A stretch of 64,000 nt of DNA, taken from Haliotis rubra (lineage: Eukaryota). Both the position numbers and the translations under genes were made by a program. This document shows positions 10,422 through 64,000 of this stretch, piece after piece. Position 1 is the stretch's first letter; each line of letters opens with the position of its first letter. The stretch is from contig NW_025767589.1 in the NCBI RefSeq assembly GCF_003918875.1, forward strand, positions 186,001 to 250,000, given 5' to 3'. The notes below the pieces were generated by a model. The model was not told the DNA's origin, ran no database searches, and saw nothing but the letters and a program-made list of their open reading frames with translations.

Positions 10422-11579
10422 GGCGTAACCTTTAATACAGTTTGACTGGATATTTCACTTCCTGGCTGCTCAACATGGCGGGTGCCAGGATATTCGTTGT
10501 GGTGGTCTTTCTTAGATGGATACAATTGACATCAGGTGAGTAGATCAATGTCGTTATTTACCACGAGCCATTTCCCACCCGACCCCTGACAGCCCTACTG
10601 TGGGGGTCCTGTCATCCCTACCACCCGGTTCTGTTATCCCGTCCAAAGCAACCCTGTATTCCCCAATCACCGTGGTTGGTCATCCCTAACCAGTTATTCT
10701 ATCACCACTACTCCAGGGATGTATCAAATGCATTAAATTTGCCCGAGCCTTGTCCCAGGTTTGCCTCTCCGCCCAAACCAAGCTTTCTGCCATACTTATC
10801 CCCGGGTCCTGTCATGTGTACATCTGGATTCTGTCAGTTCTACCCCAGAGCCCTATTATCCCTTTTCCTTCCTCATCTTATCCCTACTTTGGGACGCCAG
10901 CCTAAGCGTGATTATACCCCTACGGTGTGGTCCTATCACCAATGTCCCCAGATCATCTTATCCTTACACCAGGCTCCTAACACCCCTAACCTGCTGTCCA
11001 ATTATCCCTACCCAAGTTTCATAACACCCCCATCCTGTGGCTCTGTCCTCCCTACTCCTAGGTCCTGTCCCTGTCCTATCCCTTGGTTATTGCAGTTATA
11101 TTTCGGGGCCCTGATCATCCCACATGCCAGATCACATGAGGTAAACATGCACTTGAACTACCATTTTGTTGAAGCAAAGGTTATGAAACAATATAAAGTA
11201 AATACACAGTTTGTTTCGTTTGTGTCACTGATACTGGTTCGCTTACCCAAGAGATGCTGCGAATGTAGCTCTCCTTCCTCATCCGAAGCCCACTGAAGCT
11301 GAATCTCTCCTCGATATTTGTTCCAAAGTTGAACACATCAAAGAGGTACATTGGGCGGGGTTAATACATATTTAGTGATCAAACGTCTACGTTGTAGGTA
11401 TTTCACTTCCTTGTTGAGGGTATTGGGATAGTATCGCTCTTGCTGTAAGTTGGGCGATAAAAGGACTCAAAGTTTGATGGCATACAAATGATGCAAATGA
11501 TAAAGCTTGAAATGGTCCAGTACACAATCATTGCAGGGACTCAAGTTGATATGGCTAGACTGGCCTACAATTGCTAACA

Positions 11580-11900
11580 TCTGAGGGATGATGTAAATCC
11601 AGCTAGGGTCCATGCAGGAAGCAGAATAATGGTCCCTAGTATGGTGATCTACCTTCAGTTGTTGGCAATCTATAGTCTGTTTATATATTGTCTTGTCATG
11701 TGAAGTTAAAATGGTTTAAATGTAATTACTAGTCTTAAAATTTATATCTGTGATAATCAAGTTGCTTTCCTGTCCTTAGTTGACTTGTTTGTATGATTTA
11801 CCTTTAATTTTTTATTTCTATAACTTGATTTAGTCACGATATGGCTGAAATACTGCCGATGTGCCTTAAATCCTTAACTCAGTGACTCACTCACTCACTC
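11580..11900 (+). mobile_element. 5'-truncated 3'UTR fragment of the I/Nimb LINE family
   Basis: Matches 8095-8429 and ends in taactca(ctca)n. Related copies at 19956-20175 (-), 30560-30820, 58730-59048 and 59382-59573. Confidence 0.8.
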
Positions 11901-12458
11901 AAGTTGATGATAAACAGACGTGTAATCGTCAGAGACTAGTACCTGGTCATTGATTCGCACATCTCTGTGTCTCCCCACAGGTTCCTGTCAACCAGGAAGG
12001 TTTGGAGACTCCTGTAGCTACTCCTGTCACTGCGGGACATCATGTGACTACAGGTGCCTGTTCTGGTTCTTGTGATCCGGGATGGAAAAAGGAAGGGGGT
12101 CTTTGCCAGAAACGTGAGTGACACATACACTGGCTTTGATTTTGATGTGTTTACTATTCTGCTTTGGTCGGTGTGAAAACAGCGTCTTGGTACAAATCAT
12201 TATTAACTGCATGATGATCCCTTAACTCACACCATATATAACATTTGTAATACAACAGATAGTCTGCAGGGTTGTGATTGACATTATACTATTAACTAGA
12301 ATCCGACTATTACCATACATGTACATGTAAACCCATGTTAACCTTTTCACCATTAGCACATACTGGGATATGTATGGAATTTTGTGAGGAGACGATTATT
12401 GTCTTACATTGCACAGAAGTAGAGAGCATCAACAACATCTTGAGTGCCCGGAGATTGG

Positions 12459-12676
12459 TGAGTGAGTTTAGTTTTACGCCGCACGCGCTGATCTGTAAAT
12501 AATTGAGACTGGACCAGACAGCCCAGTTATCAACGGCATGAGCATCGATCTACCCAATTGGGATACGATGACACGTGTCAACCAAGTCAGCGAGCCTGAA
12601 CCCCGATCCCGCTAGTCGCCGCTTACGACATGCATGGGTTACTGAAGATCAATTCTAGGCCGGATCTTCATGGGTT
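12459..12676 (-). mobile_element. SINE-like repeat family 2
   Basis: Shared core with copies at 14093, 27398, 57151 and 59584. (tcac)n tail. TSD-like cggagaYtgg on both sides. Confidence 0.85.
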
Positions 12677-12743
12677 ACGGAGACTGGTACCTGTCAGGGT
12701 ATAGATGGGGGCAGTGACGTTACATGATGATTGTACTTTACAG

Positions 12744-12947
12744 AAAATATTGCACTGAACAAGACAGCATCAACAACATCTGGATTGTTCGGAGGCTGGC
12801 CCGCATCAAAGGCTGTGGACGGAGACAGTGACATACGTGGTGAGGGTAGAACCTGTTTCCACGCTTTTAGATCTCCGTCAGACTGGACGGTGGATCTGGG
12901 CCGGGACTTCCAGCTGTATGACATCAGGATCTACAGCAGACATAAAT
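12744..12947 (+). CDS. Copy A F-type lectin domain, first exon
   Basis: NIALNKTA...AVDG...CFH...WTVDLG...IRIYSR, the FTP/fucolectin signature; AG/GT bounded. Confidence 0.88.
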
Positions 12948-13276
12948 GTAGGTATCCAGACATCGTGATCTAAGAGAGAACGATGCTATTTAGATTGTTA
13001 TGTATCACCTTAGACTCAACTTACACACATTACTGAAGTCTAGTTTTTCACTATAGTACACCAAACACATGAAAAAGTAACAATTTAGCAATTACGTAAT
13101 TCTTCAACAAGTGTTCTGCTGACACATATCTATCAACCTATGTAAACACTCTGCCACAATGTTCTATACAAGCAATATGTGGTGGTCAATAGAGAGGTGA
13201 ACACCTAGACATGTGCAATAGGCTGGTATTGCTTTATTTGATGAGGCATATAATCATTTTATGCTGGTGATCATTC

Positions 13277-13795
13277 TATATCAATAACAGTGCTACCCCA
13301 TCATACCTCAACGAGTGATACCTAGACGTATTTATATCAATAACAGTGCTACCCCATCATACCTCAACGAGTGATACCTAGACGTATTTATATCAATAAC
13401 AGTGCTACCCCATCATACCTCAACGAGTGATACCTAGACGTATTTATATCAATAACAGTGCTACCCCATCATACCTCAACGAGTGATACCTAGACGTATT
13501 TATATCAATAACAGTGCTACCCCATCATACCTCAACGAGTGATACCTAGACGTATTTATATCAATAACAGTGCTACCCCATCAAACCTCAACGAGTGATA
13601 CCTAGACGTATTTATATCAATAACAGTGCTACCCCATCAAGCAGTTGCCTCAACGAGTGATACCTAGACGTATTTATATCAATAACAGTGCTACCCCATC
13701 AAACCTCAACGAGTGATACCTAGACGTATTTATATCAAAAACAGTGCTACCCCATCATACCTCAACGAGTGATACCTAGACGTATTTATATCAAT
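13277..13795. repeat. 56-bp minisatellite, 9 full units plus a partial
   Basis: Unit tatatcaataacagtgctaccccatcatacctcaacgagtgatacctagacgtatt. One unit has a 6-nt longer variant. Confidence 0.97.
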
Positions 13796-14092
13796 TCTAT
13801 TATTGTTATTCTGTTTTGTAATTGGTTTACATATTGAAAGCAAACAGGACCATTCCGCTCATGTAAGGGAAGTTCAGTAACATAAATAAGGGCTCTCATT
13901 GTTAGAATAACGCATTAATAACTTTGAGACTAAGAATCTTTACTGTTGACTGCATAATCTGGTTCAGTGAGGGAATCACGTATTGAGAGGCGATCTAGTG
14001 CAAACATGTGCATCCAGATGATTCTTGAGCCTCGGTGTGCTGTTACCGTTCGCAAACGAACGAGTTTAGATGTAATTATTCTAAACATATTC

Positions 14093-14333
14093 GACCCGTG
14101 TAGGTCCGGGGTAGAATTGATCTTCAGCAACCCATGCTTGTCGTAAGAGGCGACTAACAGCATCGGGTTGTCAGGCTCGCTGACTTGGTTGACACATGTC
14201 ATCGGTTTTCAATTGCGCAGATCGATGCTCAATCTGTTGATCACTGGATTGTCTGGTCCAGACTCGATTATTTACAGACCGCCGCCATATAGCTGGAATA
14301 TTGCTGAGTGCGGCGTAACCTAAACTCACTCAC
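14093..14333 (+). mobile_element. SINE-like repeat family 2
   Basis: gacccgtg...cccatgcttgtcgtaagaggcgactaa...aactcactcac. TSD tctaaacatattc. Absent in the copy C intron. Confidence 0.9.
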
Positions 14334-14510
14334 TCTAAACATATTCTTATCTAATGCATATATTGTTGGATTGGAAGTGTCACCTCTCAATTACGTCATT
14401 AGTCCGTTGCATGAACATAGTGTTATGATCAGATATATACGCTGACAGCAACTATATTGACACAGTATCATAGTACATCGTAGTCTGAAACAGTATTTGT
14501 TTTACTCAAG

Positions 14511-14711
14511 TCTACGGGAGAAATGCCAACTCCAACATCTATCTGAACAACGACCCCTCCAGCATCTGCTCCACCCTCCCGAGTCCACCAGATACTCCCA
14601 ACCCAACTGACGTGACGTGTAACGGAACCGGCAGATACGTCACCATCAGGAACCCGGGGACAGGGCCTGTACACGATGATTCACTCAACATCTGTGAGGT
14701 GGAGATTTATG
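14511..14711 (+). CDS. Copy A F-type lectin domain, second exon
   Basis: YGRNANSNIYLNND...C...[15 protein letters not shown]...LNICEVEIY. Confidence 0.88.
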
Positions 14712-14746
14712 GTAAGTCATTTACTGTATTTACAAGTAATTGTCAT

Positions 14747-14866
14747 CAAATACTCCCAACCCAACTGACGTGAAGTGTAACGGCACCGGCAGATACGTCA
14801 CCATCAGGAACCCGGGGACAGGAGGATTTAATGATACACTGAACATCTGTGAGGTGGAAATCTATG
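14747..14866 (+). pseudogene. Partial duplicate of the second lectin exon (3' half, variant loop)
   Basis: [38 protein letters not shown] followed by a GT donor; no usable acceptor seen. Confidence 0.85.
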
Positions 14867-16367
14867 GTAAATCATCATTGTATTTACAAGAATTTGTCTA
14901 TTCGTGTCCTGGTGATACAAGTGTTTTTTATTGTCCTTCAACAGCAAAGTCCTTGTTTGCAAGTTACAGAATAAATTCTGAGCATTTGTAAAAATTATCA
15001 ACCATATCTTAGAGTGAGTTGACAGGATGTTTTCATTTATATCAAACTGGATAATTTAAAATGGTTATTTCACTTTGTTGTGTTCAACTTGCATGTTTCA
15101 TAATTTCTATCAGTTCTTTCCCGCTGAATATGTCACTCTTTCATTATCAATAAACTTATATTACATAGTCTTTAACATCTGGACGCATTCTTTTGAACAG
15201 CTGAACTATATTCATAAACGGATGATTAGAATTTCAATAGTTTGAGTAAACAAGGTTTGAAACAGCTATACACTACAATAAGTAACTAAATGGGATCCCA
15301 TATAATATCAATTAAATGCTTCTTGTACCGAATTCAGAAAAGCCATTTAGGATTCTATATTGATATCTTCTATAAACACCTTCTAGTAAAAGACAGGCTG
15401 TGATAGACATGACGCCATTCTAACTTGCCTGTGATGATAAAAACATTTGTTAACGATTGCACTCACTACCCCATAATGCCTAATCACCTACGTTATATAT
15501 CTAAATTCCACAATCCACCCTTCTCTACGTGTCCCTAGCCCTCCAAAATGCCTCTATGGTATATTAGGTTAACAGTCGAAGAAGGGAATGAAATGCCGGC
15601 GGTTCGATCTCCTTGTAGCGTAACATCAACATACGCTTAAATATCGTAAGTATTGTTATTCTGGACAAACAATCACACTCTTTTTTTAAACAGAACCTTA
15701 CACCCAATTATACCCCATATCACCTTTCTCACCCTCTTTCAATGACGTCAACTGTTCCTATTTCCTTATGCCAATGCACCAGCCTGCAGTACAGGTGTCT
15801 ACGGGATGAACTGTAATGTGTTCTGTCACTGCCTTGATTCGACCTGTGATCGCTTGACTGGACTGTGTCCTGGAGACTGTATACCAGGGTGGCAGGGACA
15901 GAGATGTGATAAAGGTGAGACGTTTGTACTGTCAGTATTGATAGCTTCCAGTAAATGATACGGTAGACTTTAGATACGTATACGCGCCAGGGTATACGCG
16001 GCCCATTGTAGACGCTGACGTCAGGTTAGTCATGATAAGTAGGAATGATTACCAAGGGGCAGTCGTTGTGGAGGTCTTACTGTGGGTTAGTTTTCAGGGG
16101 CTTGTAACGTGGTGCATCAACATCACCTACTGACTCGTTTCATACACTTTGCTGAACCGATCACCTAGAATGCTTCACAAATCAGATGCCTTTCAACTTT
16201 ATTTACGAATGAAGATTTTTCTTCTTATCTATATTTTACAGCTTGCAACAGCACGTATGGCACTAACTGCAATAAAACGTGTCCTGGGCGGAAGTGTTCA
16301 GCTTCAAGTTCGTCATGTGACCGTCACACCGAGCCTGTGAGAATATGTCCAGTGCACCTTCTGGGAA

Positions 16368-17129
16368 ATATATATATTTATTACCCACGTGGTCAACGTA
16401 TGGGTAGTTGCATACTAATCTCGTACGTCACACGAGTGTCGTATCGCGTTGACCTGTGTCGTAACGACTTGACCTGAGATTCTAACGATTTCATTGGATA
16501 ACCGATGACCTCTCAATTAGGTCACATTCTGACGTAACAATTTTTTCATTCATAACAAACACGTGGATCCATTCATTCTACAACTAAATGCATTGTGGGA
16601 ATGTAAACATCGCGAACGTTGCCGTGTCGCTGTTTAATTGTGGGTCGAACTGAGACATTATACCCGTCGAAAAACGTAAACGCAATGTTTCCACCAGTGA
16701 TGTTAGCCGAATGAAGCAACTGCAAACCAAGAAACGGGGTGCTACGGAGTAGTTTACTGTACGAGGCTGTACGAGGCGATGACAACTAACATGCATCGTG
16801 ACGTCGGTTACCAAGGCAGTGACGTCATTACAGTGACGTCATGCAAATATTGTACTACAGTACAAAACTCTTCCGCAACCTCTTTATGAAACCGGTTTCG
16901 GTTTGAAACCAAAATATTAACAAAACTACGTTATTTTGTCAATTTAATGCATGTAAGACGTGGGTAATAAATAAAATACCACACTCGGTCTCATTACATA
17001 CGAATTATACGAAACTCGTGACCTTCCTGTGTTATCTGACCTCGCTTTCGCTCGGTCAGATACCATAGGAAGGACACTCGTTTCGTATAATTCGTATGTA
17101 ATGAGACCTCGTGTAGTATTCTCTATATA
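16368..17129. mobile_element. Non-autonomous element with subterminal inverted repeats and a long terminal palindrome
   Basis: tatttattacccacgt (~16375) and acgtgggtaataaata (16958). Imperfect hairpin of about 145 nt at 16975-17120 centred on ctcgctttcgctcg. TA-rich ends. Confidence 0.7.
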
Positions 17130-20100
17130 CCATATGGAAATTCTTGCCATCTTTTTCTCAGAATGTGATGCCAATCATTATGGACCAGACTGTCGTGGCG
17201 TATGCTCCTTCAGACACTGTGCAGGGAACTCTACATGTAACCGAGCAGGGACCTGTGACAGTGGATGTGAGATGGGGTGGACACAGGGTGACTGTACAGG
17301 TAATGTCCTTATAGTATTGCTACTGTTATGTAAGGTATATATCTGAGTGGCATAACCCATGTAAAGCTCTTTACTAACTGAATTGTGGCATTTAATAAAT
17401 CGAGTTGAAAGGACACTGGCATAGAATCCAGTGGACTAAAGAGCACAAGGTAAAGATTTCAATATTTCACATGTTGTTATTTTGTTATGTGCTAAGGTAT
17501 AAGACATTTGATGCCATGTCAATTGAATGTTATATGCTGAATGAATTCACATTGATATAATAGTTCAGTTACATTGTTATTGTCTCTCTATGAATCATCC
17601 TGGGGTATAACATTTCTCCCTTGTAAAGATGTAACTGTTGTGTGCTCAATCTCCCTCTTCCTTTGCGTGAAGCATGCCAGAGTGGGAAGTACGGTTCTAA
17701 CTGCAGCATGTCTTGTGATTCACGTCATTGTGAAACTGCACCAGTTTCCTGCGACCACGTGACTGGAGCCTGCGCTGCCGGTTGTCGGGAAGGATGGATT
17801 GGAGCAGACTGTACTCAGAGTAATGTTTCCTAAAACTCTTATTTAAAATAATATGTCTGGTGATGTGATGTTGACAGAAATGTTCACAGCCCCAGCTCTC
17901 AAATGATTTAAAATATATTTCAAGCTGACCTTTGAGCCAATTGCAGTGGAAGGTACAATGTTCGATGTGAGTGCAGTGGTGTATGGAGTGCTACAAGGAT
18001 ATGTGTCAGGGCCGTTTTTACACAATCTCTCTGTGAGTTTTAAGGTAAAGCTTTTAAAGACGCACCCGAGCTTTACTGCCATGATACGCAGATGCTGCTT
18101 AAGGATGTCTGTAACATCTGTCTTCGTGATTCAACCCTGCAGGTTTGCGTACTGGTCGAGCTTTGCTCATGACACGCTGCGGCTCGATTTTCGATAGTGG
18201 TCGCTTTTATTGCCTCGAATACATGCAAACGGACACGACGCTTAGAAGACTGCACTACTGCAATACTTATTACGCAAATTGGTATAGTTGATACCTAAAT
18301 AAAGCCAGGCTCAATGTCAACGTTCTGGCATATGGAATCTCTGCCTATATGGCACTGGTGTATGGTTATCGAAAAAAAAAGGTGTCCGAAATATGTGCAA
18401 TGACCATTCGTTTTGGAAGTATGTACACAAGCTGAAAGCGCCATTGTTGGGTTTTCCAGAGCTGTAAAGGACCCTGGAATCTTTATGGATTTAAGGGAAC
18501 ATCATACGGCCATATCTGTGCAGAGTGTGATATTTTCATACTTCAATCAGAAATACCGACCATAGCTGGCACTTATTAACTAATGAAGCAAAATATTATC
18601 TTGTGAGATCACATATTGAAAACTAACAACTTGTTAGCATTTCAATCATGTGATAATGGCCTTTTCGCCATTGGCAGCAGGCAGCACTCATGCTAATGGT
18701 GGACATTGTAGTTTTCGGTATTGAATCATGTCCACTGGCACTGCTGTCTGATTTCTGATGTGTCATCTTTCACAAGGGGTTCATATGATGTATCAGTGCG
18801 AATTCAGTTGAAGAGCTACAGAAGATTTGTTAAGACATGTCATAATTCAAACATATTTCAATTTCCTTCTTAATATTATCATTTCATCATTTAATACCTG
18901 ACCTTCAGGATGCAAACCTGGAACTTATGGGCCTGACTGTACTCGTTGTGGGCACTGTGACGTCACGTGCAATGTTGGAGATGGACGCTGTCCCGGAGAG
19001 TGTCTGGACGGCTTCACTGGTGACCGATGTGATGAAGATGTTCGGGGTCTTAATAAAAATATTGTTTTAGATCAGCTTTAACATTGATATTTAGTATGCA
19101 TTGAATCTTTGAAAACATGGGCGATATTCACAAATTTTAGTCATATTGTATCTGGGACATACATGTATTCACAAAATAATGTTTCAGCTCATGTTAATTT
19201 ACATTGGCGTTTGATATCAGATTCAGTGTCTCCTGTTACAAGATTCAGCTTCCCTATTACAAAGCGGAGTTATTGGAGGAGCAGTAGTGCTTGTTGTAAT
19301 GCTGTTGCTGATTGGTGGATTGGTGATATGTTTGCTGAAATCTGGAAGGTAACTTTGAGAAGGCGACCAAAAGTGGTGCACTTGTGCCTAATCCCTTTGC
19401 GTTTTGAACAATAAAATATGTTTTAAAATAAACGTTGAAAACAGTATGAAGCAGGTGTTAAAATAATGTGTACATGTATATTGCTCTTAACTCTAAATAC
19501 CAACTGCGAAAGGTACATGTACAGCGGAAATATTTCTGTCACTGGATCAATGTGTATTCAGCCCCCTGTGGAGTATACAACCCAAGATGGGCTGTCAGGC
19601 TCTAAAATGTTATAACTGTCACCTGTCCTATATCTTTTAAACACAACTTAAATTGTTTCCAGACTGGCACAGGTGTGAAATGGGTACTCCTGAACACACC
19701 TGGCACAGGTGTGAGGAAGGCAGACACGTCTGGAACAAATGAGCAAGACTACACCGAACTGAATGAAGTCACCAGGGAGAGAGAGGAGAAGTCACAGTAT
19801 GATGTCATTCAGAACAAAGTGTATGGAAACAACCAAATCTGAGTTGAGAGCAGTGCATCCTTTTCGTATGTGCTATGACATACCTTTAATGTTCACATAA
19901 CTGAATATGTTCTGCCCAGAGGACAAGTCTGGAATAGTGTATATGGTTATACCATGTGAGTGAGTGAGTGAGTGAGTAGGTTAAAAGTTTACAGTTTTAT
20001 AGCGATGAAAACAAGGTAATCAATGTAAAACACCTGTCAACGATGGACAGTAAAACAACTAGATTATCATAGATATATATTTATAACTAGTACTTAAATC

Positions 20101-21093: not shown

Positions 21094-21279
21094 TCTTATA
21101 TACATATCATAGTCATTGTGGGACTCTGATGTCCTAAAGTTTGGACTGACCTTAGAGGAATGGTCATTCCTAACTTCTGTGTGAACATATGTTTGTGAGA
21201 GGTGAATTGTTTGATAGAGATCTTCAGAAGTTGCGTAATGACAAAATAGTAATAGTCATTGCATAGACTATAAGTTCTT

Positions 21280-21534: not shown

Positions 21535-21708
21535 NNNNNNNNNNNNNNNNNNNNNNNNNNNNNNNNNNNNNNNNNNNNNNNNNNNNNNNNNNNNNNNNNN
21601 NNNNNNNNNNNNNNNNNNNNNNNNNNNNNNNNNNNNNNNNNNNNNNNNNNNNNNNNNNNNNNNNNNNNNNNNNNNNNNNNNNNNNNNNNNNNNNNNNNNN
21701 NNNNNNNN
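21535..21708. other. Assembly gap
   Basis: Run of N. Confidence 1.
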
Positions 21709-23560: not shown

Positions 23561-26500
23561 ATGGCGGGTGTCAGAATATTCGTTGTGGTGGTCTTACTTC
23601 GATGGATACAGCTGACATCGGGTGCGTACATCAGCCGATTGTCTTACGTCGAAGTATACGTACCTTCCTCGCGGATGTGTACATCACTACAAATAATCTA
23701 TTGTGTATATATATACTGAGACGAGCATGTTGCATACACGTTTGACAAAACTTGTTTTGCAAGTGTTATATATAGCAGAACCCGTCCACTATTTGCGTGT
23801 GCATCTCAGCTAACGGGACAATACCAATAAACGTGTTAGAATCCTTGAGTATAACTCACTGTTGTGTGAAGCGTTTGCTTTGTACAAAGCTTAAAAAATG
23901 TTATTGCAGTCGAGAGGAAAGAGCAAAATGAAAACGGATTATCCCAACTTCAGTATATTACATATGGAAGGAAAAGGTTGTATTTCTAATCTGTTATAAA
24001 CTTCGCGTATAAGTCACTGTTGTGTGAAGTGTGTGCTTAAAAGCTTAAAAGATAAAACTGGAGTCGAGAGGAAAGAGCAAGATGTACATGGATTATACGA
24101 TGAGACTAATGAATCGTTTTCACTAGGATATTCTATTAACCTTTCCAAACAATTAACTTCACAGCAATAAATATTCATCCGTGCATTTTACCAACTGACA
24201 ACCCTCTATATATTATACAAGGAAGAAAAAGGTTGCGTGTTCGTCATAAATAATCTACTGTCAAAAACTAGAGCAATTACTTCTTGTGTATTTCTAATCT
24301 GTACCTTGAACTACAAATTAATGTAAATATATCACAAGTTGTACATGTGAGTTTGCACATGATGTCAAAAATAAATCCTCATTTCAGTCGTCGTCAAACA
24401 TGACCTTTGCCTACGTTTCGGCCCTGTCATACATAACTCGACCTTTAGTCATCCGAATACAGAGGTGAAGTCATCAATATTGAGGCCATGTCATCTACAG
24501 CACAGTGCATCTATGCATCTAAACATTGTCTTTTCATCCATACAACAGGACGTCATTATCCACTATCCTCTTGACCGGCCGTCAGTAAACGCGTAGAAAC
24601 CAATTTAACCGTAATCGATTTCAGTTTGTTTATTTCGATATTTGCAAGTTATATTAGAAGTCAAGGAGGGCTATCATGGAATCCTGACATTCTGCTATAC
24701 TTACCCTGTGGTCCTGTCACCTCTACCTCAAGGTACCCTCCAAGGCATAATCCGGGTGTCTTGCTATCCACAATATCCCACTTTCCTTTCTCAAGTCCAT
24801 ATCATTCTTACTGTGCAATTATGTGATTCCTATCCCGTGGTCCTCTGTCAATCCTACCCTCGGGTCCTTTCATCCCTCCCCAGAGTTCTGTCAAGCTCTC
24901 ATCCCAACCACTGTCAACCCTTCTCTGGGGTCGCGTCACCCCTACCCCCACGGTTCTCTTATCCCTTCCAAGGATCCCTGTTTTCATTCCAGTCCCTGAT
25001 AGTCCTACTTTTGGGGTCCTGCCATCACTACCTGACGGTTCTGCTATCCTTCCAAAGGGTCACTGTGTTCTCTTTCCGTGTCCTTCCTAGTCTTGTGTCC
25101 TAACCCTACACTATCAGTAGGGCATTTCATTTCTATTTCGTGACATTGGCAATCCTTACCCATGATGGCATCATCCCTGCCATGGAGTTATCCTTGCCTC
25201 AAGTAACATCATCCCATTCATATCACACATTTCATCATCTAAAACCCAGATGCCAGTCACCGATACATCTGAACATGTATAATTCATGTTTAGTGTCCCG
25301 TCATCAAAGGCCCAGGGCCCATTCATCTGCATCCGAAGTTAAGTCACTGTTTAGCACTGCCCACACTTCCCATGGATGTCCATTAGCAAACTGTCCCGCT
25401 TCAGGAAGTGCTATGTATGCAGGATATATGATAACATTGACCGTTCAGTGCAGTATGTCCGTTCCATAAGACATAATGCAATATACCATTACTATTACCT
25501 GTAAATAAGCATGATGTGGTGTTTGGTATGAATGTTTGTGAGGTAAACATATACTCTAATACCATGTTGTTGAAGCAACAGTTGTGAAACCATGTCACGT
25601 GAAGAAACAGTTTTCATCGTTTCAGTCTCTGTTAAAGTTCAAGGGATACTGAGAGTGTAGCTGTCCTTCCTCATCCACCTCCCTCTGAATGCCCCCGGTG
25701 TATGGTCCAAAGTTGAACACATTAAGGAGTAACATATGTTGTATTTGGGATTACACTTTCTTAGTAAAGTACAGATTCTAGTACTTTTGTTGAGTCCCAC
25801 CGCCAGCACACAAAGTCAGACACCTAGACCGCTCAGCCACCGCGGCTTCCACGAAAATGGAAGTCGGACAAATGGTAGTCTAGACTGCGGACTTGTGCAC
25901 CCCTCTGATAAGTGTTAATTGGCACGCGTACGGCTCCCACGGCCGAAAGCTATGATATACACAATGCCATTTAGAAAGTGGTCTAATGTAACATATGTTA
26001 TATATTTCGGATTACACTTTCTTAGTAAAGTACAGATTCTAGTACTTTTGTTGGGTCTAGAACATGGAGAAAAACCAAGCAAATCTTGTGTCAATGAATT
26101 GATTAAATATGTCTATTTCAATCTTGTAAGAAATGATGGCACTGTAATAAATACGCAAAGTGACATTCTAGAAGAAACAAATGGGTTTTATAAAAAAATG
26201 TTTTTCTAGTGAAGATTGCACAGAATTGATCAAGAGAATCTGTTTTCCGATACAGACGTTCCAAGATTATCTCCTAAGGAATCCAATCTAGAAGGTACAA
26301 TAACGTATGAAGAATGTCTTACGGCATTGAAAAATGAAAAAATCCCCAGGACCTGATGATTCACTGCTGAATTTTAAAAATTCTTTTGGAATGATCTAAA
26401 TATATATATTTGATTACTCCCTGAACTATGCACATGAGCATGGGTCCTTATCTGTAACCCAGAAACAAGGATTAATCACATGTTTGCCTGAAGCCAATAA

Positions 26501-31760: not shown

Positions 31761-31791
<31 letters not shown>

Positions 31792-46700: not shown

Positions 46701-49686
46701 ACTTCACAAAATGTAATTTGAAAAATAATGAATAATGTTTCTCTGATGATACATCTATGTATCCGAAATGGGGTCCCTATCTGTCGACTCTAGAAAAACG
46801 TTAGCAAAACCCACTCAAACCCATCCATTCATCGTGCAAATGACGTTAGTGCCAAATCAAGTTTTGCACGTGCAGCCTCAAGAATTTAAAAGACACTTTT
46901 AAACCACAGTTCCAACGGTACTTGAAATGCCAAGATTGTCAAATGTGCAACGTGAACGTGCCGTTGGCATGTTGCAAGCGGGAAGATCAGTTATTGACGT
47001 CGCAAGAGTAATGGGATGCAGCCGTCGTACTGTGTATGACTGGCGAGGTCGTCTACAACAAACTGGCACCACTTCTGATCGCCCAAAGTCGGGTCTTCCA
47101 CGTGTGACGTCACGAGCAGAAGACCGTTAAATCGTCCTACGTCACCTACGTGACAGATTTCTGCCGGCTACACGAACCAGGGCTGAGATGTTTAGAGGTC
47201 GACTGTCCTCACAGACCATTCGAAATCGGTTGCGGGCTGCCAATCTCCATTTTCGACGTCCACATCGTGGGCCAATATTGACGCCGTTTCATCAACGTCA
47301 ACGTCTGCTGTGGGCCCAACGTCACCTCCGATGGACCCCGAGAGACTGGAATCGAGTCGTCTTTAGCGATGAATCCAGGTTTACCCTCAGATTCGCGGAC
47401 TCAGTATCAATGTTGTGTACAGGAAGTCGACAGATTCGGGGGCATAGTGTGGGGTGTTTTCTGTGGAAACAACCGTTCCCAACTTCTGGTCATCCGTGGA
47501 AACCTCGAAGCTGCTGCTTACCTCGACCAGGTGCTCACCCCTGAACTCGTTCCTTTCATGGCGGCTCATTGCCCAGGTCTACAGTTCCAGCATGATAATG
47601 CTCGGCCGCATACCGCGATGTTGACACGAAATTTTCTTCAAAACGCTGGAATCAACGTCATGGACTGGCCATCGAGGTCCCCTGACCTTAATCCAATAGA
47701 GCACGTTTGGGATGCACTTGGGAGAAGGCTTCGTGGTCTTAGGAACCAACCTCAGAATTTGCAGGAACTTGGCGCTGCCTTGCAAGAGCAATGGCGCAGA
47801 ATCCCCAACCACGTGTTCACAAGCATCAGGCAGTCGATGAGGAGACTGTGTTTGGCAGTGGTGAATGCGCGGGGCGGCCATACACGATATTGAACTGAGA
47901 GATTTCGCATTTTTATTCTTGTGACTTGACATTCTTTATACCAATGTTTTGGAACGGCGGTGTAGCCTAATGGAACTGATTATGGCACTGTCAGTGTATT
48001 GAGTACATCATACAGATCTCAGCAATGAAATAATAACAATTTAACCTTCTTACCATCTCTTGTTCTTTTATAGTGCCCTGAAGAAAGAATCTGAAGTTTC
48101 TTTTTTGACTAAGTATATATATCACCAACACATCGTATTACTATATATATTTCAGTTTAACTGTCCGTATTGTTTGTAAAGAAGGAAAACTGGCTTTCAG
48201 GATGCTGACGTCACCTCAACAATTCAACACTATCATGTGACCGGAAGTACACATGATCCAAGTGTCACTCTGTTGATTGACAGCTTACTTACATGGATGA
48301 GTGACCCACAGAGATGTTCCTGCACAATCATGTCACAGTGAGAATATTTTGTTCACATCAGTCCATTTCTGTACGAACAAAATTATTCAGTGTAACAAAA
48401 ACAATAGTTCTTTCTGATTGACATGTAAAATATATACTTGTCTCAGAGGCTCTACACATGAAAATGTATCTACCATGTATCTGAAAGATTTCAGGTCAGC
48501 GTTTTGAAAACTCCCTAATATGTATTGGAACAAGCCGTTTAAATAGTCGCTTCTTGGTGACACTTTTCCTTTTTCCACCCTGGGACACGTGGTTGAGGCA
48601 TGTGTGAGGTCACAAATACTGAAATATGTAAAGCCACATTACATGAGCAGACATGTAAAACACAATACCAGTCAAACACAGTCAAACACAATATCAGTAA
48701 ACAATGATTCCTTGTAGTTACAGCTTACTAAATATCTTACTGCTTTTTTAAGTCGTTCTGATTTATAAAGACATCAACAGAAAATATTGTAGTGATTGTA
48801 AAACCGCTGTCGTAATCACTATAACTGTGGGGGTTATTACAAATATTTCATTACCCTACTCTCATGTCGTTTCATCTGATACGAATATTTTGGTATATAT
48901 AATGTGCATCGATAACCATCCATTCTTTACATGCTTTAAGTGTCCTGTTTTATACGTCACTAAATATTCAAGTCATGCAACCCGTCAACACTTTCTAATA
49001 CCTTCTTGAGTTCACCCATGAGTGGGGCGGTGGGGTAGCCTAGTGGTTAAAGCGTTGGCGCGTCATGCCGAAGACCCGGGTTCGAATCCCCACATGGGTA
49101 CAATGTGTGAAGCCCATTTCTGGTGTCCCCCGCCGTGATGTTGCTGGAATATTGTTAAAAGCGGCGTAAAACCAAACTCAGTCAGTCAGTCAGTCACCCA
49201 TGAGTGGGTACATGACTTATTGTTCACTGCAGCTCTGTGAGCGAGGCACGGTTCTTGGTCCTTTTGGTGAACATCGCCAGCAGACTGCAGGACGACAGCA
49301 GGGTGGACGTCATCAGCAACATGCGACGTCTACACTCAACTCTCGGTGGACCTCAATTCTCTCAGGTAGGACACATTGATCCGTCATAATTGTCTGTCTT
49401 TGCTGGCATGTGGAATCCAGTTGTAGGTGAATTGACACATAATCATGATTCAACAAGCATCTATAGGTTTGTGTAGATTAGTATTTTACAGTCGGGTTTG
49501 AGTAATGCTAAGAAATATGTCTCCATGCTAATGCATCCTGGAGACAGCGAGACACCATATTAAGGACTCTGTGCCTTGAGTCTACAGTTCTGACGTTTTT
49601 TGTTTCACTTTCAGGAGGATGTTCGCCAGTGTCTGGAGTTTGCACAAGGACGACTGGAATCTCTTGGACTCTATGCTAATCTGTAA
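23561..49686 (+). CDS. Copy B: receptor-type protein tyrosine phosphatase with EGF / F-type lectin / EGF ectodomain (25 coding exons, apparently intact)
   Basis: Exons 23561-23621, 30927-31064, 31345-31548, 36874-37080, 38210-38341, 38744-38890, 39358-39495, 40232-40358, 40508-40581, 40832-41214, 41655-41742, 41874-41950, 42169-42205, 42864-42964, 43242-43367, 43498-43643, 43954-44089, 44174-44320, 44550-44571, 45925-45956, 46241-46354, 46547-46663, 48201-48337, 49233-49365, 49615-49686. All GT-AG with compatible phases, ending LGLYANL*. Confidence 0.9.
27398..27722 (+). mobile_element. SINE-like repeat family 2, nested in the Harbinger-like element
   Basis: Same core and (tcac)n tail as 14093. 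Confidence 0.85.
27578..27647. mobile_element. 70-bp hairpin mini-insertion with 9-bp TSD
   Basis: tagctaagatacatagcgttcactaacatga...tcatgttagtgaacgctatgcatcttaattagcta, flanked on both sides by gattattta. Confidence 0.8.
28135..28360 (+). repeat. tRNA-like repeat with aaagtacagattctagtactttt module
   Basis: A/B-box-like ggtggctgagcagg...ggttcgaatccc; related pieces at 25730-25850 and 25958-26055. Confidence 0.55.
31345..31548 (+). CDS. Copy B F-type lectin domain, first exon
   Basis: [26 protein letters not shown]...[16 protein letters not shown]...IYSRGG. Confidence 0.9.
31765..31791. repeat. (CA)n microsatellite
   Basis: Direct observation. Confidence 0.9.
32040..33310 (-). mobile_element. 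Tc1-like transposon, degenerate
   Basis: TIR cagtacaaccagaaattattgagaattta / taaaattctcaataatttctggccatacta, TA flanks. ORF with [25 protein letters not shown]. Confidence 0.92.
33622..35120 (-). mobile_element. Tc1-like transposon, frameshifted
   Basis: [48 protein letters not shown]; imperfect TIRs. Confidence 0.92.
35129..36449 (+). mobile_element. Tc1-like transposon, highly degenerate
   Basis: [49 protein letters not shown]; imperfect TIRs. Confidence 0.8.
36874..37080 (+). CDS. Copy B F-type lectin domain, second exon
   Basis: [14 protein letters not shown]...[29 protein letters not shown]. Confidence 0.9.
40232..40358 (+). CDS. Copy B transmembrane exon
   Basis: [24 protein letters not shown], followed in the next exon by the RRRRGK stop-transfer. 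Confidence 0.9.
41655..44320 (+). CDS. Copy B PTP D1 domain (8 exons), catalytic motifs intact
   Basis: [58 protein letters not shown]. Confidence 0.95.
44550..49686 (+). CDS. Copy B degenerate PTP D2 pseudophosphatase (7 exons)
   Basis: Exon phases mirror D1. LWNQMY, IQHYH and [10 protein letters not shown] remain; the signature is replaced by TIMSHSVSEAR. Confidence 0.7.
45242..45721 (-). mobile_element. Internally deleted pogo/Tigger-like element
   Basis: [13 protein letters not shown]...YRR DDE fragment; ends cagtataccctggttataa / ttatatccaagggatactg. Confidence 0.75.
46683..48115 (+). mobile_element. Tc1-like transposon, disrupted
   Basis: TIR tactgagtccaaaaagaaacttca / tgaagtttcttttttgactaagta. 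[50 protein letters not shown]. Confidence 0.95.
49024..49193 (+). mobile_element. tRNA-derived SINE family 1
   Basis: Same sequence as 20924; TSD tcacccatgagt. Confidence 0.92.
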
Positions 49687-57428: not shown

Positions 57429-59067
57429 AGGATGAGAATGTAGTGAGTGCGAGCTGTTCATACTCGACTCAACTGTTCTACATTGTACCCTTAGATTGAT
57501 CAAAGTTGTAGCTGTGTGTCTTTCTCTTCTAAGAGCTAATATCTCATGAAATCCTTCTGAAAAGCATGTACGTGTTTCTGAGGAATTGTGACCGGGACAA
57601 CAAAGGTGAAAGCTGATCACCCACGATCTTATCGAGTGTTTTGAAACGACTGTGAAAACCTGCTGTCAATACCCAGCGTCGCTATTGACTAAAGTCGCCC
57701 TTTATAACAGATGAATACGCGTAGAATTACACGTAGAGTAGACTTAACCGTTAGCACAGTTTGACTGGGTATTTCACTTCCTGGTTGCTCAACATGGCGG
57801 GTGTCAGGATATTCGTTGTAGTGGTCTTACTTCGATGGATACAGTTGGCATCATGTGAGTAGATCAACTTGGTTAATTACTACGAGACGTTTTCCTCCCG
57901 ACCGCTCACAGCACTACTCCGGGGGTCCCTACCACCCAGTTCTGTTATCCCTTCCAAAGCAACCCTGTATTCTCCAATCACCGTGTTCAATCATCCCTAA
58001 CCAGTTATTTTATCACCACTACTCAAGGGATGTATCAAATCCGCCCGAGCCTTGTCATCTCAGCCCCAAACCAACCTTTCTGCCATACTTAACCCCGGGT
58101 CCAGTCATTTCTAGATCTGGATTCTGTCAATTCTACCCAAAGCCCTATTACCCCTTTTCTTGCTCATCTTATCCCTACTTTGGGAACCCAACCTAAGCGT
58201 GATTATACCGCTAAGGTGTGGTCCTATCATCAACGTCCCCAGATCACTTTGTCCTTACCTCAGCTCATAACACCCCTAACCTGCTGCCCAGTTATTCCTA
58301 TCCAAATTTCATAACACCCCGGGCTTGTGGCTCTGTCCTGCCTACTCCTGGGTCTTGTCCCTATCCTATACCATGGGCATTGCAGTTCTATTTCGGGGTC
58401 CTGTCATCCCACATCCCGGATCACATGAGGTAAACATGCACTTGTACTAATGGTTCGCTTACCCGAGGGATGCTGCAAATGTAGCTCTCTTTCCTCATCA
58501 ACAGCCAACTGAAGCTGAATTTCTCCTCGATATTTGATCAAATCTTGAACACATCAAAGAGGTACAATGGGTGGGGTTAATGCATATTCAGTGTTGAAAC
58601 GTCTAAGTTGTAGGCATTTCACTTTCTTGTTTAGGGTATTGGGATAGCATCGCTATTGCTGTAAGTTGGGTGATAAAATGACTCAATGTTTGATGATATA
58701 CAAATCAGGCAAAGGATAAAGCTAATAGCTAACATCTGAAGGGTTACCGTAAATCTAGCCAGGGTCCATGCAGGAAGCAAAAGTACTGTAAGTAGCCAGT
58801 ATGGTGATCTACCTTCAGTTGTTGGCAATCTATAGCTTGTTTTTATATTGTCGTGTCATGTATAGTTAAACTATCTAGATTTGATTACTAGTTTTATATT
58901 TATATCTGTGATAATCTAGTTGTTTTACTGTCCTTCGTTGACAGATTTTTATAATTTACCTTTAATTATTATTAATCTATAACTTGATTTAGTCACGATA
59001 TGGCTGAAATATTGCCAAAGTGACTTTAAATTTTAACTCACTCACTCATTTCATATTGTCTTGTCAT

Positions 59068-59372: not shown

Positions 59373-59583
59373 TCTTGTCATGTGAAGTTAAAATGGTTTA
59401 AATGTAATTACTAGTCTTAAAATATATATCTGTGATAATCTAGTTGTTTTCCTGTCTTTAGTTGACAGGTTTTTATGATTTACTTTTAATTATTTTAATT
59501 CTATAATTTGATTTAGTCATAATATGGTTTAAATATAGAGGATGTGACTTAAACCCTTAACTCACTCACTCACACAAGTTGAT

Positions 59584-59823
59584 ACCCGTGAAGATCCGGG
59601 TTAGAATTGGTCTTCAGTAACCCATGCTTGTCGTAAGAGGCGACTCAGGTGGTCAGGCTCGCTGACTTACTTGACACATGTCATCGTATCCCAATTGTGT
59701 AGATCGATGTCCATGCTGTTGATGACTGGATAGTGTGGTCATGACTCGATAATGTACAGACCGCGACGATATAGCTGAAATAATGTTCAATGCGGCGTTA
59801 CACAACAAACCAACCAGCCACTG
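59584..59823 (+). mobile_element. SINE-like repeat family 2 (older copy)
   Basis: Same core; TSD aagttgat; empty site in copy A near 11901. Confidence 0.85.
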
Positions 59824-60656
59824 AAGTTGATGATAAACGGACGCTCAATCGTCAGAGACTAGAACTTTGTATTTGAATATCACACCTCTGTATCTCCCTA
59901 CAGGTTCCTGTCAACCAGGAAGATTTGGAGACTCCTGTAGCTACTCCTGTCACTGCGGGACATCATGTGACGAGACTACAGGTGCCTGTTCTGGTTCTTG
60001 TGATCCGGGATGGAGAAAGGAAGGGGGTCTTTGCCAGAAACGTGAGTGACATATATATTTAATGCTTTCCTATGGCTGTGTTGAATATCCTGCTCTGGTC
60101 GGTGTGAAAACAGCCTCTTGTTACGAATCATTATGAATTGCATGATGATCCCTTAACACCGTATAAAATATTTGTAATACAACAGATAGGTTGTAGGGTT
60201 GTGGCTGACATAAAAATATGAACTAGGATCTCCCCATAACTAAACTGTCACTATACATGTAAACGTAACCTTTTCACCATTACCTCATACTGGTATGTGT
60301 ATGGATTTTATGAGGGCATGCGTATTGTCCACAGAAGAAGACAGCATCAACAACATCTGTAGTGTGTGGAGACTGGTACCCGTCAGACTATAGATGGGGC
60401 AGTGACGTTACATGATTATTGTACTTTACAGAAAATATTGCACTGAACAAGAGCATCAACAACATCTGGAGTGTACACAGACTGGTACCCGTCAAAGGCT
60501 GTGGTTGGAGACAGTGACATAAAGGGTGAGGGTAAAACCTGTTTCCACGCTGCTGGATCTCCGTCAGACTGGACAGTGGATCTGGGCCGGGACTTCCAGC
60601 TGTATGACATCAGGATCTACAGTAGAAGCCCACGTAGGTATCCAGGCATCGGGAAC

Positions 60657-60692
<36 letters not shown>

Positions 60693-60698
60693 TATATA
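60657..60698. repeat. (TA)n microsatellite
   Basis: Direct observation; absent in copy A. Confidence 0.9.
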
Positions 60699-63600
60699 CA
60701 ATTGAATTATTCACAACGGCGCTCCAAGAAAGAACGATGCTATTTAGATTGTTATGTATCACCTTAGACTCACCTTAGACACTCTGCTGAAGTCTAGTTC
60801 ATCATTACAGTAATCAAACACATGAAAAAGTAACTTCACAAACCAACACCATGTGAGCAATTACGTAATCTTTTAACAAATGTTCTGCTGACAACATATA
60901 TATCAACCTATTTAAACACTCCACCTCAAGGTTCTATACAACAACTATGTGGTGAACAAAATAGAGACGGACACTCAGATATGTGCAAGTGGCTGGTATT
61001 GCTCTATCTGACGAGGGATATGTTCCTTATACGCTGGTGATCAACCTATAGCAATAACAGTGCTGTCTGATTACCTAATATACCTCAACGAGTGAAAACT
61101 AGACTTAGTTATAGCTATTCTGTTATATAAGTGATTTACATATTGAAAGAAAACATGGCCATTCCGCTGATGTAAGGGAACTTATAACAATAACAGCAGT
61201 AGTGGCTCTTATTGTTAGAATAACGTATTAACAAATTTGATGCTAAGAATTTTTACTGTTGACTGTATAATCTGGTTCAGTGCATAACATGTGCATCCAG
61301 ATGATTCTTGAGCTTCAGTGTGATGTTTCTGTTTGCAAATGAACGAGTTTTTATGTAATTATTCCAAACATCTTCTGCTCTAATGCATATATTGTTTGAC
61401 TGGATGCCACCTCTCAATTACGTCATTAGTCCATTGCATGAACATAGTTTTGTGATCTGATAATGAAGCTGACACAGTATTATAGTGTAACGTAGTCTGA
61501 AACAGTATATGTTTTACTCAAGTCTACTGGAGAAATGCCAACTCCAACATCTATCTGAACAACGACACCTCCAACATCTGCTCCACCCTCCCGAGTCCAC
61601 CAGATACCCCCAACCCAACTGACGTGACGTGTAACGGTACCGGCAGATACGTCACCATCAGGAACCCGGGAACTGGAGGAAGCGATGGCTATGCTAGTGC
61701 ACTGAACATCTGTGAGGTGGAGATCTATGGTAAGTCATTTATTGTATTTACAACTGATTCTCCATTCGTGTGCTAATGATACACATGTGTTTCTTTGTAC
61801 TTTCACAGCAATATCCGAGGTTTTGTAAGGTTTGTGTCCGAATTTTCTCTCAGCATTTAAGAAGCATTATCAAACACTGTGAAAGTGTGACAGTGTTGAC
61901 TGGGCATATCCATTTCGGTATAAGTGGCTAACGGGAGTGGGTATACTGACGCGTCCGTTTCTAGTCGACAAAATGCATTAATAGCTAACGTGACGGATGT
62001 CATAATATACTTGCAATAAAGCAATAATAATGTTATGGAATGAGTTAATGCTTTTGGTATCTGGCGAGACAAGGCTAATTCAGTATTCTGTATCAGGATC
62101 TTGTTAAGACACCTTGTCGTTAAGAAGTCTATATAAGGTACATATTATTTGAAATAAACAGCAGATGTTAATACTGAACAATTATCTAGGTTTTCCGGTA
62201 GGTTCAGCCATCTGGTTCACTGTTTTGTTAGTCGCTGCATTCTTCACAAGAGATAGATTTCGAGTGATGGATGCAGGCGGTAAAAGTAGGATATGCTTAC
62301 CCCTTTCACCTATATCTGATGTCATCACTGATCTTCGGAGGTTTATGTAGTGTTTTGAAATTGTGAGTGTCAATTTCCATTTTGCCCTAATGGAGTCTGT
62401 TTCGTCTGATGATCGAGACTGTTTAATATTCTCTGGAGCTGACTATTTGACAAAATCCACATGTTTTCAACATTTGCATTACCAAACAGACAGACATGAC
62501 TCCATTCTCCCATTATGTTTTATATATGATTATCTATTTGGATGTCACGTTGACAATTGCTAATTTGTTTATGGAAACTCTGGTTCTGGTTCTGTAGAAT
62601 GATGCACTTGACCATTTAGCGCCACCCATTCAGTAACATATCTAGACTGTATCTTTAAGGCTAAACATGGTGTTGTTTCTTGAGCATCAATGCGTCAATT
62701 ATCTGATTGCGAATAAAAACCCATTGTTTTCATATTCCTTTTGTCCAATAGCTGTGAAGCACATTGCACAAAAACTTGACAAATGGCAGTGACTATGATA
62801 TGAACTACGTTGCATTTGTTGGTATTATTATTGAGAAATATTGATGGGCAAAATACTGAAAATGGCGGATGATAGTCGTGACATACTGAAGATAGAACCA
62901 TAACTGTAACAAATCAAATAAGTAAAAGTAGTATAATGTTCATCCATTCGATATATCCACAATTTCCATTCTTGTCTTTATGTACTTATCTTCTCTTAAT
63001 AATGCACCAGCTTGCAGCCTAGGAATCTATGGAGCAATGTGCAATACGTTCTGTCACTGCCTGAATTCAACATGTGCTCGCTTGACTGGATTATGTCCTG
63101 GAGACTGTAGACCAGGGTGGCAGGGTCAGAGATGTGATACAGGTGAGACGTTTGTACTGTCAGGATAGGTGGGTTCCAGTCAGTGGTACTGGAGAGTGTA
63201 GATACGTATACGGGCCAAGGTATACTCGCCCAATTGTTGACTGTGACTTCAGGTTAGTCATAATTGATGCGAGGGAATAACAAGACTCACTTTGGCCTCG
63301 TTTCTAGGGGAATGTTAAGTGGTGGATCGACATCACCGCAGAACTCGTTTCACACACTTACCTGGGAAGCTTTAAAACACTAATGTTACTTTCCTTTATC
63401 TTCACCAATCACCTCTTAATCCACTGTAACAGCATCAACCTTGCCTTTTGAATCTTACCCCAGCTTTGTATATCATTAGATTATCAGCCACCCTTCTGTA
63501 CACCAATTAGACTCGTTGGCTTCTATCACTTACCAACTTAATCCACTGTAACACACCATATCTGCTTTTGTATATTATATTCACTTTCATCTTACAATCC

Positions 63601-64000
63601 CCTATTTATTGTTTACACATGCTTAAAATCACTCTGGCTTTATGTACATTACTAGTATCCTGTATAACTGTTAGTTAGCATTCACCTGTATGTAATCACT
63701 ACTAACATATTCCAGAATGTCATTCCAAACATTATGGATCCAACTGTCTTGGGGTATGCTCCTCCAGGAACTGTGAGGGAAACTCTTCCTGTAACTCAAC
63801 AGGGACCTGTGACAGTGGATGTCTGACAGGGTGGACACAGGCAGACTGTACAGGTAATGTCACTTATGAGGGTCACTAGCGTGGTTGGCAGTTAGTATAA
63901 CTGATTGAGACGCTGTCTGGGAGCATAGGCATTTTCCACTTGAATAACTTTCCTAATATGTACAGGTCATGTGAAACATGACAATGGCAAACTTTGTTAA

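Follow-up and report, generated by a model that had tools for sequence, protein, structure and literature searches.

A probable birth-and-death array of abalone lectin-EGF receptor genes with two alternative back ends

Can one molluscan gene cluster place the same type of lectin-bearing ectodomain in front of two different tyrosine-signalling modules, in the manner of the paired receptors of vertebrates? This question is raised by a 64,000-nucleotide stretch of the blacklip abalone Haliotis rubra (assembly GCF_003918875.1, contig NW_025767589.1, positions 186,001 to 250,000 of the forward strand; hereafter the window, with positions counted from its first letter). A first-pass annotation of the window had described a candidate paired-receptor cluster of three genes with a lectin/EGF ectodomain, in which gene A ends in a short tyrosine-motif tail and gene B in a receptor-type protein tyrosine phosphatase (PTP). 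Our analysis indicates that the window is probably part of a birth-and-death tandem array of abalone lectin-EGF receptor genes with two alternative back ends, in which B is intact, A has decayed and the third gene, C, is frameshifted. The paired-receptor idea is a plausible and reasonable hypothesis for the family as a whole, and appears to be better illustrated by an intact gene pair in H. rufescens than by A and B.

Ectodomains and back ends across the array

Comparison of the window with itself reveals three paralogous units in tandem on the + strand, A (10475-19842), B (23561-49686) and C (from 57794 past the window end), which have in common a signal exon, a first EGF exon, two F-type lectin exons and downstream EGF exons (Table 1). 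The signal exons of the three units are ~90% identical in nucleotide sequence. A and C are colinear including their introns (77-88% identity), and B matches both in its exons and the adjoining intron sequence (74-85% identity), with the lectin exons of A and B being 72-76% identical. Past the EGF exon at 17162-17299 in A and 39358-39495 in B, alignability ends, and the membrane and cytoplasmic exons of the two genes are unrelated. The earlier claims of three tandem paralogs with common signal, EGF and F-type lectin exons, and of unrelated membrane and cytoplasmic exons in A and B, therefore both hold. All proteins retrieved with the window exons come from Haliotis, H. rubra being the closest.

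The junction of one ectodomain type with two unrelated cytoplasmic modules in one array, which the first-pass annotation had proposed from the window, is borne out at family level in four Haliotis species (H. asinina, H. cracherodii, H. rubra and H. rufescens). With the N-terminus of P0018, a tail-class protein of H. rufescens, as query, the best matches belong to both the tail and the phosphatase class, come from all four species and are 64-87% identical, and the N-termini of the two classes are 64-90% identical across the four species. Specifically, P0018 and the phosphatase-class protein P0069 of H. cracherodii are 89.7% identical over 390 aa and unrelated beyond. In H. rufescens, the first 300 aa of P0031 (tail) and P0073 (phosphatase) are 87.7% identical, and their genes are neighbours on one strand, that for P0073 coming second, with its called start 6.8 kb and its own signal exon ~7 kb downstream of the P0031 gene. 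Both genes are intact, each with its own signal exon. Additionally, on a further contig of H. rubra, L001, a unit whose start matches that of B comes after three tail-class copies; stops and frameshifts interrupt at least one of these copies, and the rest are matched in part. The possibility that L001 represents the same locus as the window was rejected on account of 87-93% identity, different spacing and the three tail-class copies. At the H. rufescens phosphatase gene, a second open reading frame resembling a signal exon (...VLVVLLSWIQLASG; L003 46232-46414) follows the signal exon after 2.4 kb; it could be a remnant or could act as an alternative first exon.

The tail and phosphatase classes also interleave in ectodomain trees, whether these are built from the lectin domain alone or from EGF1, lectin and EGF2. 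The approximately unbiased (AU) test rejects monophyly of either class, with p-AU values of 0.013 and 0.007. In every comparison, the two classes cease to be homologous past the same EGF exon ('ECDxxHYG'), at the intron that follows it. All EGF exons are phase 1-1, and the stalk exon of B is phase 1. The common end of homology together with the phase-1 exons would make exchange by unequal crossover easy. In the birth-and-death reading, each array unit would encode a signal peptide, an EGF domain, an F-type (fucose-type) lectin domain and an EGF stalk, continued by one of two back ends. The first would consist of more EGF domains, a membrane helix and a tail of ~75 aa with three tyrosines (YxxL, 9-12 residues, YDV[I/L], then YEN), and the second of a stalk and helix unlike those of the first, then a juxtamembrane region, a first PTP domain (D1) that looks active and a second one (D2) that is dead. 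Unequal crossover and conversion between neighbours would keep swapping and homogenising the ectodomains between the classes.

The same exon structure bears on an alternative, in which one transcription unit can to some extent end in either tail: read-through transcripts would splice tail-class EGF exons to the stalk/helix exon of the next gene, and RNA processing would choose the tail alongside separate genes. Such splicing would be in frame, as the EGF exons and the B stalk exon are phase 1, and it would fit the class homology stopping at the same intron each time; moreover, RefSeq assigns P0002 (tail) and P0070 (phosphatase) to a single H. rubra gene, as its isoforms X1 and X2. However, both B and P0073 possess their own signal exons and complete ectodomain exons, and Gnomon isoforms across tandem paralogs are often artefacts. 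We consider this alternative improbable.

Intact gene B, decayed gene A and frameshifted gene C

The model of B was obtained by mapping H. rufescens P0050 and the short-tail protein P0018 to the window and joining the exons at GT..AG sites. It gives a single open frame of 1013 aa in 23 exons, every splice site being GT..AG, and encodes in order a signal peptide, an EGF domain, the lectin domain, three EGF domains, the stalk and helix, a juxtamembrane region, PTP D1 and a C-terminal domain. The D1-D2 junction (44320 to 46241) is canonical and in frame and was placed by hand; the reference protein carries 19 extra residues there. For the junction of the two lectin exons, a donor TGTAG/GT with an acceptor ...AG/AAATGCC is in frame and was rejected on the RefSeq proteins and the H. 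asinina gene, which place the true donor 4 bases and the true acceptor 10 bases upstream of the rejected sites. The ectodomain of B is 72% identical to that of the tail-class P0018, whereas P0050, one of the nearest relatives of B in the cytoplasmic part, has a lectin head of another type.

As the first-pass annotation had claimed, B carries both PTP domains, D1 being recognised by motifs and Pfam and the degenerate D2 by fold. D1 has the features of a classical receptor PTP, namely a KNRY-type loop, a WPD loop, HC(X)5R and the Q-loop QTKEQY, and looks catalytically active. In the B paralog P0072, Pfam Y_phosphatase is matched over 1-233 of 234 positions (E 1e-79), and B's own exon pieces match at 2e-12 and 3e-10. 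In the C-terminal ~230 aa of the B type, Pfam matched no second PTP domain. A structural model was therefore made from the C-terminal part of P0072, which is visibly near-identical to B there. This model (predicted local distance difference test score (pLDDT) 78.5, predicted template-modelling score (pTM) 0.80) superposes on PTP domains, and its best match is the D2 domain of PTP epsilon, with a template-modelling (TM) score of 0.73 and E 4e-11. By this model the C-terminal domain of B is a shortened, presumably dead D2 of PTP fold, from which CX5R is absent. B thus resembles the receptor PTPs (RPTPs) alpha/epsilon, LAR/sigma and CD45 in having a D1 with all catalytic motifs and a membrane-distal D2 of PTP fold, and its D1 is most similar in sequence to the solved domains of RPTP alpha, sigma, LAR and epsilon. 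It differs from them in that the abalone D2 is ~230 aa, unseen by Pfam and without CX5R, and in its unrelated ectodomain.

On the lectin domain, Pfam reports F5_F8_type_C and NedA-like galactose-binding matches just above threshold. The best solved relatives found by sequence search are striped bass FBP32 (3cqo, E 4e-12) and also the pneumococcal fucolectin-related protein, Sm-hPAF and eel agglutinin. The His and two Arg positions of the fucose site (His-Arg-Arg) align with those of solved F-type lectins such as FBP32, eel agglutinin and the pneumococcal protein, whereas the 'DCC' disulfide segment beside the first Arg is replaced in the abalone domain. The assignment as an F-type lectin is justified by sequence, and sugar binding is predicted.

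For gene A, the intact relatives used for comparison were P0018 of H. rufescens, paralogs from H. rubra and the P0030 gene of H. asinina, whose exons map at ~94-100%, except for two stretches that run beyond exon ends. Four independent lesions are found in A, which lie in the EGF1, EGF3, membrane and tail exons. EGF exon 1 has lost 5 bp, and EGF exon 3 is truncated, the position of its remainder being taken by a high-copy repeat with a summed contig depth of 3e5-1e6 in the DNA run and 75-nt inverted arms (16967-17041 and 17054-17128); the only nearby donor at the truncated exon is cryptic and in the wrong phase. The membrane exon has lost the acceptor that intact copies use, and 22 bp of it are duplicated in tandem, a change seen neither in two H. 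rubra paralogs nor in the H. asinina gene. Relative to intact copies, the tail exon differs by about +11, +6 and -36 bp (hand alignment). Splicing of A at the second acceptor of the duplication keeps the helix in frame and turns the tail exon into RLAQV-stop; splicing at the first gives the tyrosine tail in frame at the cost of the helix, which is translated in a wrong frame and vanishes. No combination of canonical splice sites in A yields helix and tail in one frame. Rescue of the tail by an internal acceptor (AG at 19714-19715) was considered and rejected, as its pyrimidine tract is weak and it has no read support. A therefore reads as a pseudogene, a decayed copy of the tail class. The short tail that the first-pass annotation ascribed to A, DYTEL-x12-YDVI...VYGN, does exist as an open reading frame at 19663-19842, but the proposal that A encodes ectodomain, helix and tail together fails on the four lesions.

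The decay of A looks recent, since its lectin exons and four EGF exons are still open. With the signal exon also open, one may ask whether A is still functional, either as a nearly tail-less membrane decoy or because the lesions are assembly errors. Skipping of the two damaged phase 1-1 EGF exons together with use of the acceptor at 19243 would indeed give an open frame through the helix, with an 8-residue tail. Against this stand the number of the lesions and their multi-base, differing kinds; additionally, none of the indels listed for the DNA run falls on the membrane or tail exons of A, and RNA-like runs have almost no depth over part of its 3' region (below). A functional A is, in our judgement, highly improbable.

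Three small runs cover exons and not introns of the examined stretch, as RNA would. The usable read evidence consists of depth bins and loose contig ends, with no clean splice joints of A. RNA-like contigs on the tail start at 19724 or 19746 and extend upstream with sequence absent from A, including the 36 bases deleted in A, and one RNA-like contig on the membrane exon lacks the 22-bp duplication. Presuming that these runs are RNA, the contigs imply that intact-tail paralogs are transcribed. None of the RNA-like contigs shows A's own version, and depth is ~zero on the A-specific start of the tail exon (19518-19698), although contigs cannot prove absence. In this window, then, the two members of the pair are not both intact and expressed, A being broken and its own version unseen among these contigs. 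At the level of genes, the claim of a paired array is borne out by the intact adjacent pair of H. rufescens, and it fails for the window's short-tail member, A. Gene C reads as a third copy carrying one frameshift, and its class is not readable within the window.

Several points weigh against the birth-and-death reading. The groups for the AU test were chosen after a first tree had been seen. RefSeq models of the array can be chimeric, the model P0001 taking exons from three array copies, so that some of the proteins with the same ectodomain and the other tail could be mis-joined; the H. rufescens pair P0031/P0073 and B are independent of this worry. The 5-bp deletion in EGF1 of A and the 2-bp deletion in C are read from the assembly sequence alone, and the DNA run covering the 3' end of A may be the assembly's own sample. 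Reads were aligned at 90% likeness, which mixes in paralogs, and the runs are only presumed to be RNA. Finally, the ligand binding, phosphorylation and phosphatase activity proposed for these receptors are predictions from sequence.

The tyrosine-tail family and the paired-receptor question

A search with the tail of A against 1.84 billion cluster representatives returned three matches, all from Haliotis, of which two are H. rubra 'MEGF10' models and one is a H. asinina protein with lectin, EGF domains, helix and the same tail. Wider searches gave dozens of Haliotis proteins with lectin, EGF domains, helix and tail, from the same four abalone species as above. In the alignment, the tail of ~75 aa begins with LL(K/R)xGRLxW after the helix, continues through a variable stretch and closes with a conserved end, (D/N)YxxL, 9-12 residues, YD(V/I)(I/L) and then (V/A)YEN. 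The three tyrosines are kept across diverged subfamilies, even where the lectin domains are ~30% identical to that of B. The short tail thus defines a real conserved family, seen in these searches in abalones only. A Haliotis subfamily made up of P0035, P0037 and P0039 keeps the juxtamembrane LLKQGKLPW, but its tail is devoid of tyrosines, their positions being replaced (in P0035, DVNDLADVN...LEDIL). In the model of P0003 (H. asinina XP_067678666), the tyrosine tail runs straight into a mariner-type transposase, which marks the model as chimeric.

RefSeq labels the tail family 'MEGF10/11-like'. Their build recalls that of Draper, CED-1, MEGF10-11 and PEAR1: a stalk of EGF repeats, which Pfam matches weakly to EGF_PEAR1L, DSL and laminin-EGF, precedes one helix and a short tail that bears tyrosine motifs. 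Unlike those receptors, the abalone proteins have an F-type lectin head, and their tail is without detected relatives outside Haliotis. Pfam found no EMI domain in P0018, P0031 or P0072, and no NPxY is present in the aligned tails. Because EMI and NPxY are lacking, the tail-class proteins do not belong to the Draper/MEGF10 group despite their names, and the 'MEGF10-like' name rests on the EGF repeats. For annotation, this label masks a lectin-headed receptor family seen only in abalones, and many H. rubra copies of the array are pseudogenes or chimeric models.

Draper signals through a motif resembling the tyrosine-based activation motif of immunoreceptors (ITAM) to a Syk-type kinase. In the abalone tails, the 9-12 residue spacer fits the broad consensus (D/E)xxYxx(L/I)-x6-12-Yxx(L/I) and falls outside the strict spacing of 6-8, and the motif of A is not in frame with its helix. 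The second tail tyrosine also fits the consensus of the immunoreceptor tyrosine-based inhibition motif (ITIM), and the third is a YxN site. The closest parallel in motif is CgIgR of the oyster, whose ITAM (EGDYTEL...YEKL) binds CgSyk (PMC6994640), which means that ITAM-Syk signalling exists in molluscs. CgIgR is likewise a molluscan receptor whose own tail has (E/D)xxYTEL followed by a second Yxx(L/I). It differs in its Ig ectodomain, in an inter-motif spacing of 10 residues (our count) and in having no phosphatase counterpart (PMC6994640), and its likeness to the abalone tail is one of motif.

How might the two classes act together? The lectin heads would bind fucosylated glycans. Tail-class receptors may become phosphorylated on the YxxL/YDVI pair and recruit a Syk-type kinase, as in the oyster ITAM receptor, and phosphatase-class receptors with near-identical heads may be drawn to the same ligands and set the local level of tyrosine phosphorylation. 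The first-pass annotation went further and proposed a working activating/inhibitory pair in the window array, in which the ITAM tail is opposed by the phosphatase on the same glycan. The ectodomain type common to both classes, the adjacency of the genes, the fit of the tail to the broad ITAM consensus used for the oyster receptor and the catalytic motifs kept in D1 of B all agree with this. On the other hand, A is the sole tail-class copy that lies fully within the window, and it cannot encode helix and tail together; its own version does not appear in the RNA-like contigs; and both the spacing beyond the strict limit and the ITIM-like second tyrosine blur the activating assignment. A working pair of this kind is unlikely.

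The roles could also be arranged differently. Since RPTP alpha and CD45 are able to activate Src kinases, either class might be the activating one. The two classes might cooperate, with the phosphatase stripping the inhibitory C-terminal phosphate of a Src-family kinase, as RPTP alpha and CD45 do, and thereby priming tail-class signalling on the same ligand. The resemblance of D1 to solved RPTP alpha, sigma, LAR and epsilon is in line with this, as is the catalytically dead D2, which is found in that two-domain enzyme group; sequence similarity among PTP domains, however, is no predictor of substrate, and we regard cooperation as quite unlikely. A broader proposal is that abalones possess a paired system in which neighbouring genes set matched fucose-lectin/EGF heads, kept alike by conversion, on an ITAM-like tail or an RPTP, with tail choice by read-through possible. 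A single glycan ligand would then gather both a tail that can be phosphorylated and an enzyme that acts on phosphotyrosine, and the system would be a second, independent invention of paired receptors, its phosphatase being part of the receptor. This broader proposal is doubtful on the present evidence.

The comparison with known paired families, KIR, LILR, Ly49, Siglec and SIRP, nevertheless has substance at the level of genes. The abalone genes have related ectodomains with different back ends in one gene cluster (in the window, on L001 and ~7 kb apart in H. rufescens). As in the vertebrate families, the clustered genes undergo rapid gain and loss with many pseudogenes, and their ectodomain trees cut across signalling class. 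The candidate abalone system differs in having a lectin and EGF ectodomain instead of Ig or C-type lectin domains, in carrying the tyrosine motif in its own tail instead of in an adaptor, and in a counter-member that bears a phosphatase domain instead of ITIMs.

A nearer precedent is found in the snail Biomphalaria sudanica, whose SudRes1 region contains receptor-like tyrosine phosphatases with MEGF and galactose-binding domains (GBD), clustered with other MEGF or MEGF/GBD genes; these clusters show gain and loss of copies and domains, and the region is associated with schistosome resistance (PMC12297450). The likeness extends to EGF repeats with a galactose-binding-like/F5-8-C-type domain, one helix and PTP domains, which the model of B fits, and to tandem paralogs with loss of copies and domains and non-phosphatase MEGF/GBD genes alongside (PMC12297450). 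The phosphatase-type architecture is hence already known from Biomphalaria. The paper describes no conserved tyrosine-motif tail class and no pairing, and the likeness to abalone is one of architecture (PMC12297450). Literature searches of incomplete coverage found nothing relevant on invertebrate paired receptors with a receptor-phosphatase member or on Haliotis with F-type lectin and EGF, and no paper on the abalone-only tyrosine tail or on the two classes as paired receptors. If the classes are functionally coupled, abalones would offer an invertebrate paired-receptor system whose counter-member has a built-in phosphatase rather than a recruited one. Such a system would be lectin-headed, with ligands that can be probed on glycan arrays, and would give a handle on how molluscs tune tyrosine-based signalling, with a link to the schistosome-resistance locus SudRes1 of snails.

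Feature coordinates and window content

Table 1. Exons and associated features of genes A, B and C in the window.
Gene	Feature	Position	Strand	Remarks
A	Signal-peptide exon	10475-10535	+	ATG; phase-1 donor; 90% nt identical to B and C signal exons
A	First EGF exon	11981-12113	+	5-bp deletion near 12057; frame shifts inside exon; the 5 bases are present in B and C
A	F-type lectin exon 1	12744-12947	+	open
A	F-type lectin exon 2	14511-14711	+	open
A	Duplicate of 3' half of lectin exon 2	14744-14898	+	86%, 14586-14744 vs 14744-14898; open frame; directly downstream
A	EGF exon 2	15783-15914	+	open
A	EGF exon 3	16242-16330	+	3' half missing; match to intact proteins and B ends at 16330
A	High-copy repeat in place of rest of EGF exon 3	16377-17130	.	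loose ends at 16377 and 17126-17130
A	EGF exon 4	17162-17299	+	last exon homologous to B and C
A	EGF exon 5	17673-17819	+	short-tail class only
A	EGF exon 6	18909-19046	+	short-tail class only
A	Stalk/membrane exon	19221-19348	+	ancestral acceptor lost; 22-bp tandem duplication 19221-19242 / 19243-19264
A	Tail exon	19663-19842	+	DYTEL-x12-YDVI...VYGN, out of frame with helix; homologous to P0001, P0030 and P0018 tails
B	Signal-peptide exon	23561-23621	+	splice-joined gene model
B	First EGF exon	30927-31064	+	open
B	F-type lectin domain, two exons	31345-37080	+	31345-31548 and 36874-37080; two mariner-type remnants in intron
B	Three EGF exons	38210-39495	+	38210-38341, 38744-38890, 39358-39495
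B	Stalk and membrane helix exon	40232-40358	+	
B	Juxtamembrane exons	40508-41214	+	40508-40581, 40832-41214
B	PTP D1, eight exons	41655-44320	+	WPD at 43540; further motif at 43636
B	Degenerate D2, five exons	46241-49686	+	PTP fold, no CX5R; stop codon 49684-49686
C	Signal-peptide exon	57794-57854	+	
C	First EGF exon	59904-60041	+	open
C	Lectin exon 1	60432-60633	+	2-bp deletion near 60455
C	Lectin exon 2	61523-61729	+	open
C	Two EGF exons	63011-63853	+	63011-63142 and 63716-63853, open; 3' end and tail of C outside window

Two assembly gaps lie close to A. The gap at 21535-21708 is intergenic, 1.7 kb past the stop codon of A (19840-19842) and 1.85 kb ahead of the ATG of B (23561), and touches no exon. 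Its flanks occur in the same order and on the same strand on a paralogous H. rubra contig, where 155 bases separate the matches as against 174 N here; continuity of A and B across the gap fits these colinear flanks, short of proof. The second gap, 10278-10421, ends 54 bp 5' of the ATG of A, and the promoter of A is therefore unread.

The window has the character of an animal genome, with short exons and numerous transposon remnants. The latter are located at 2048-7885, 32149-34948 (- strand) and 46903-47890. Positions 5507-7885 hold a reverse transcriptase of LINE type; pieces of Tc1/mariner-type transposase are found upstream of A and within two introns of B. In the intron between the lectin exons of A, a 56-bp tandem repeat spans 13277-13795 with 9.2 copies at 95% match, and C has one related unit.

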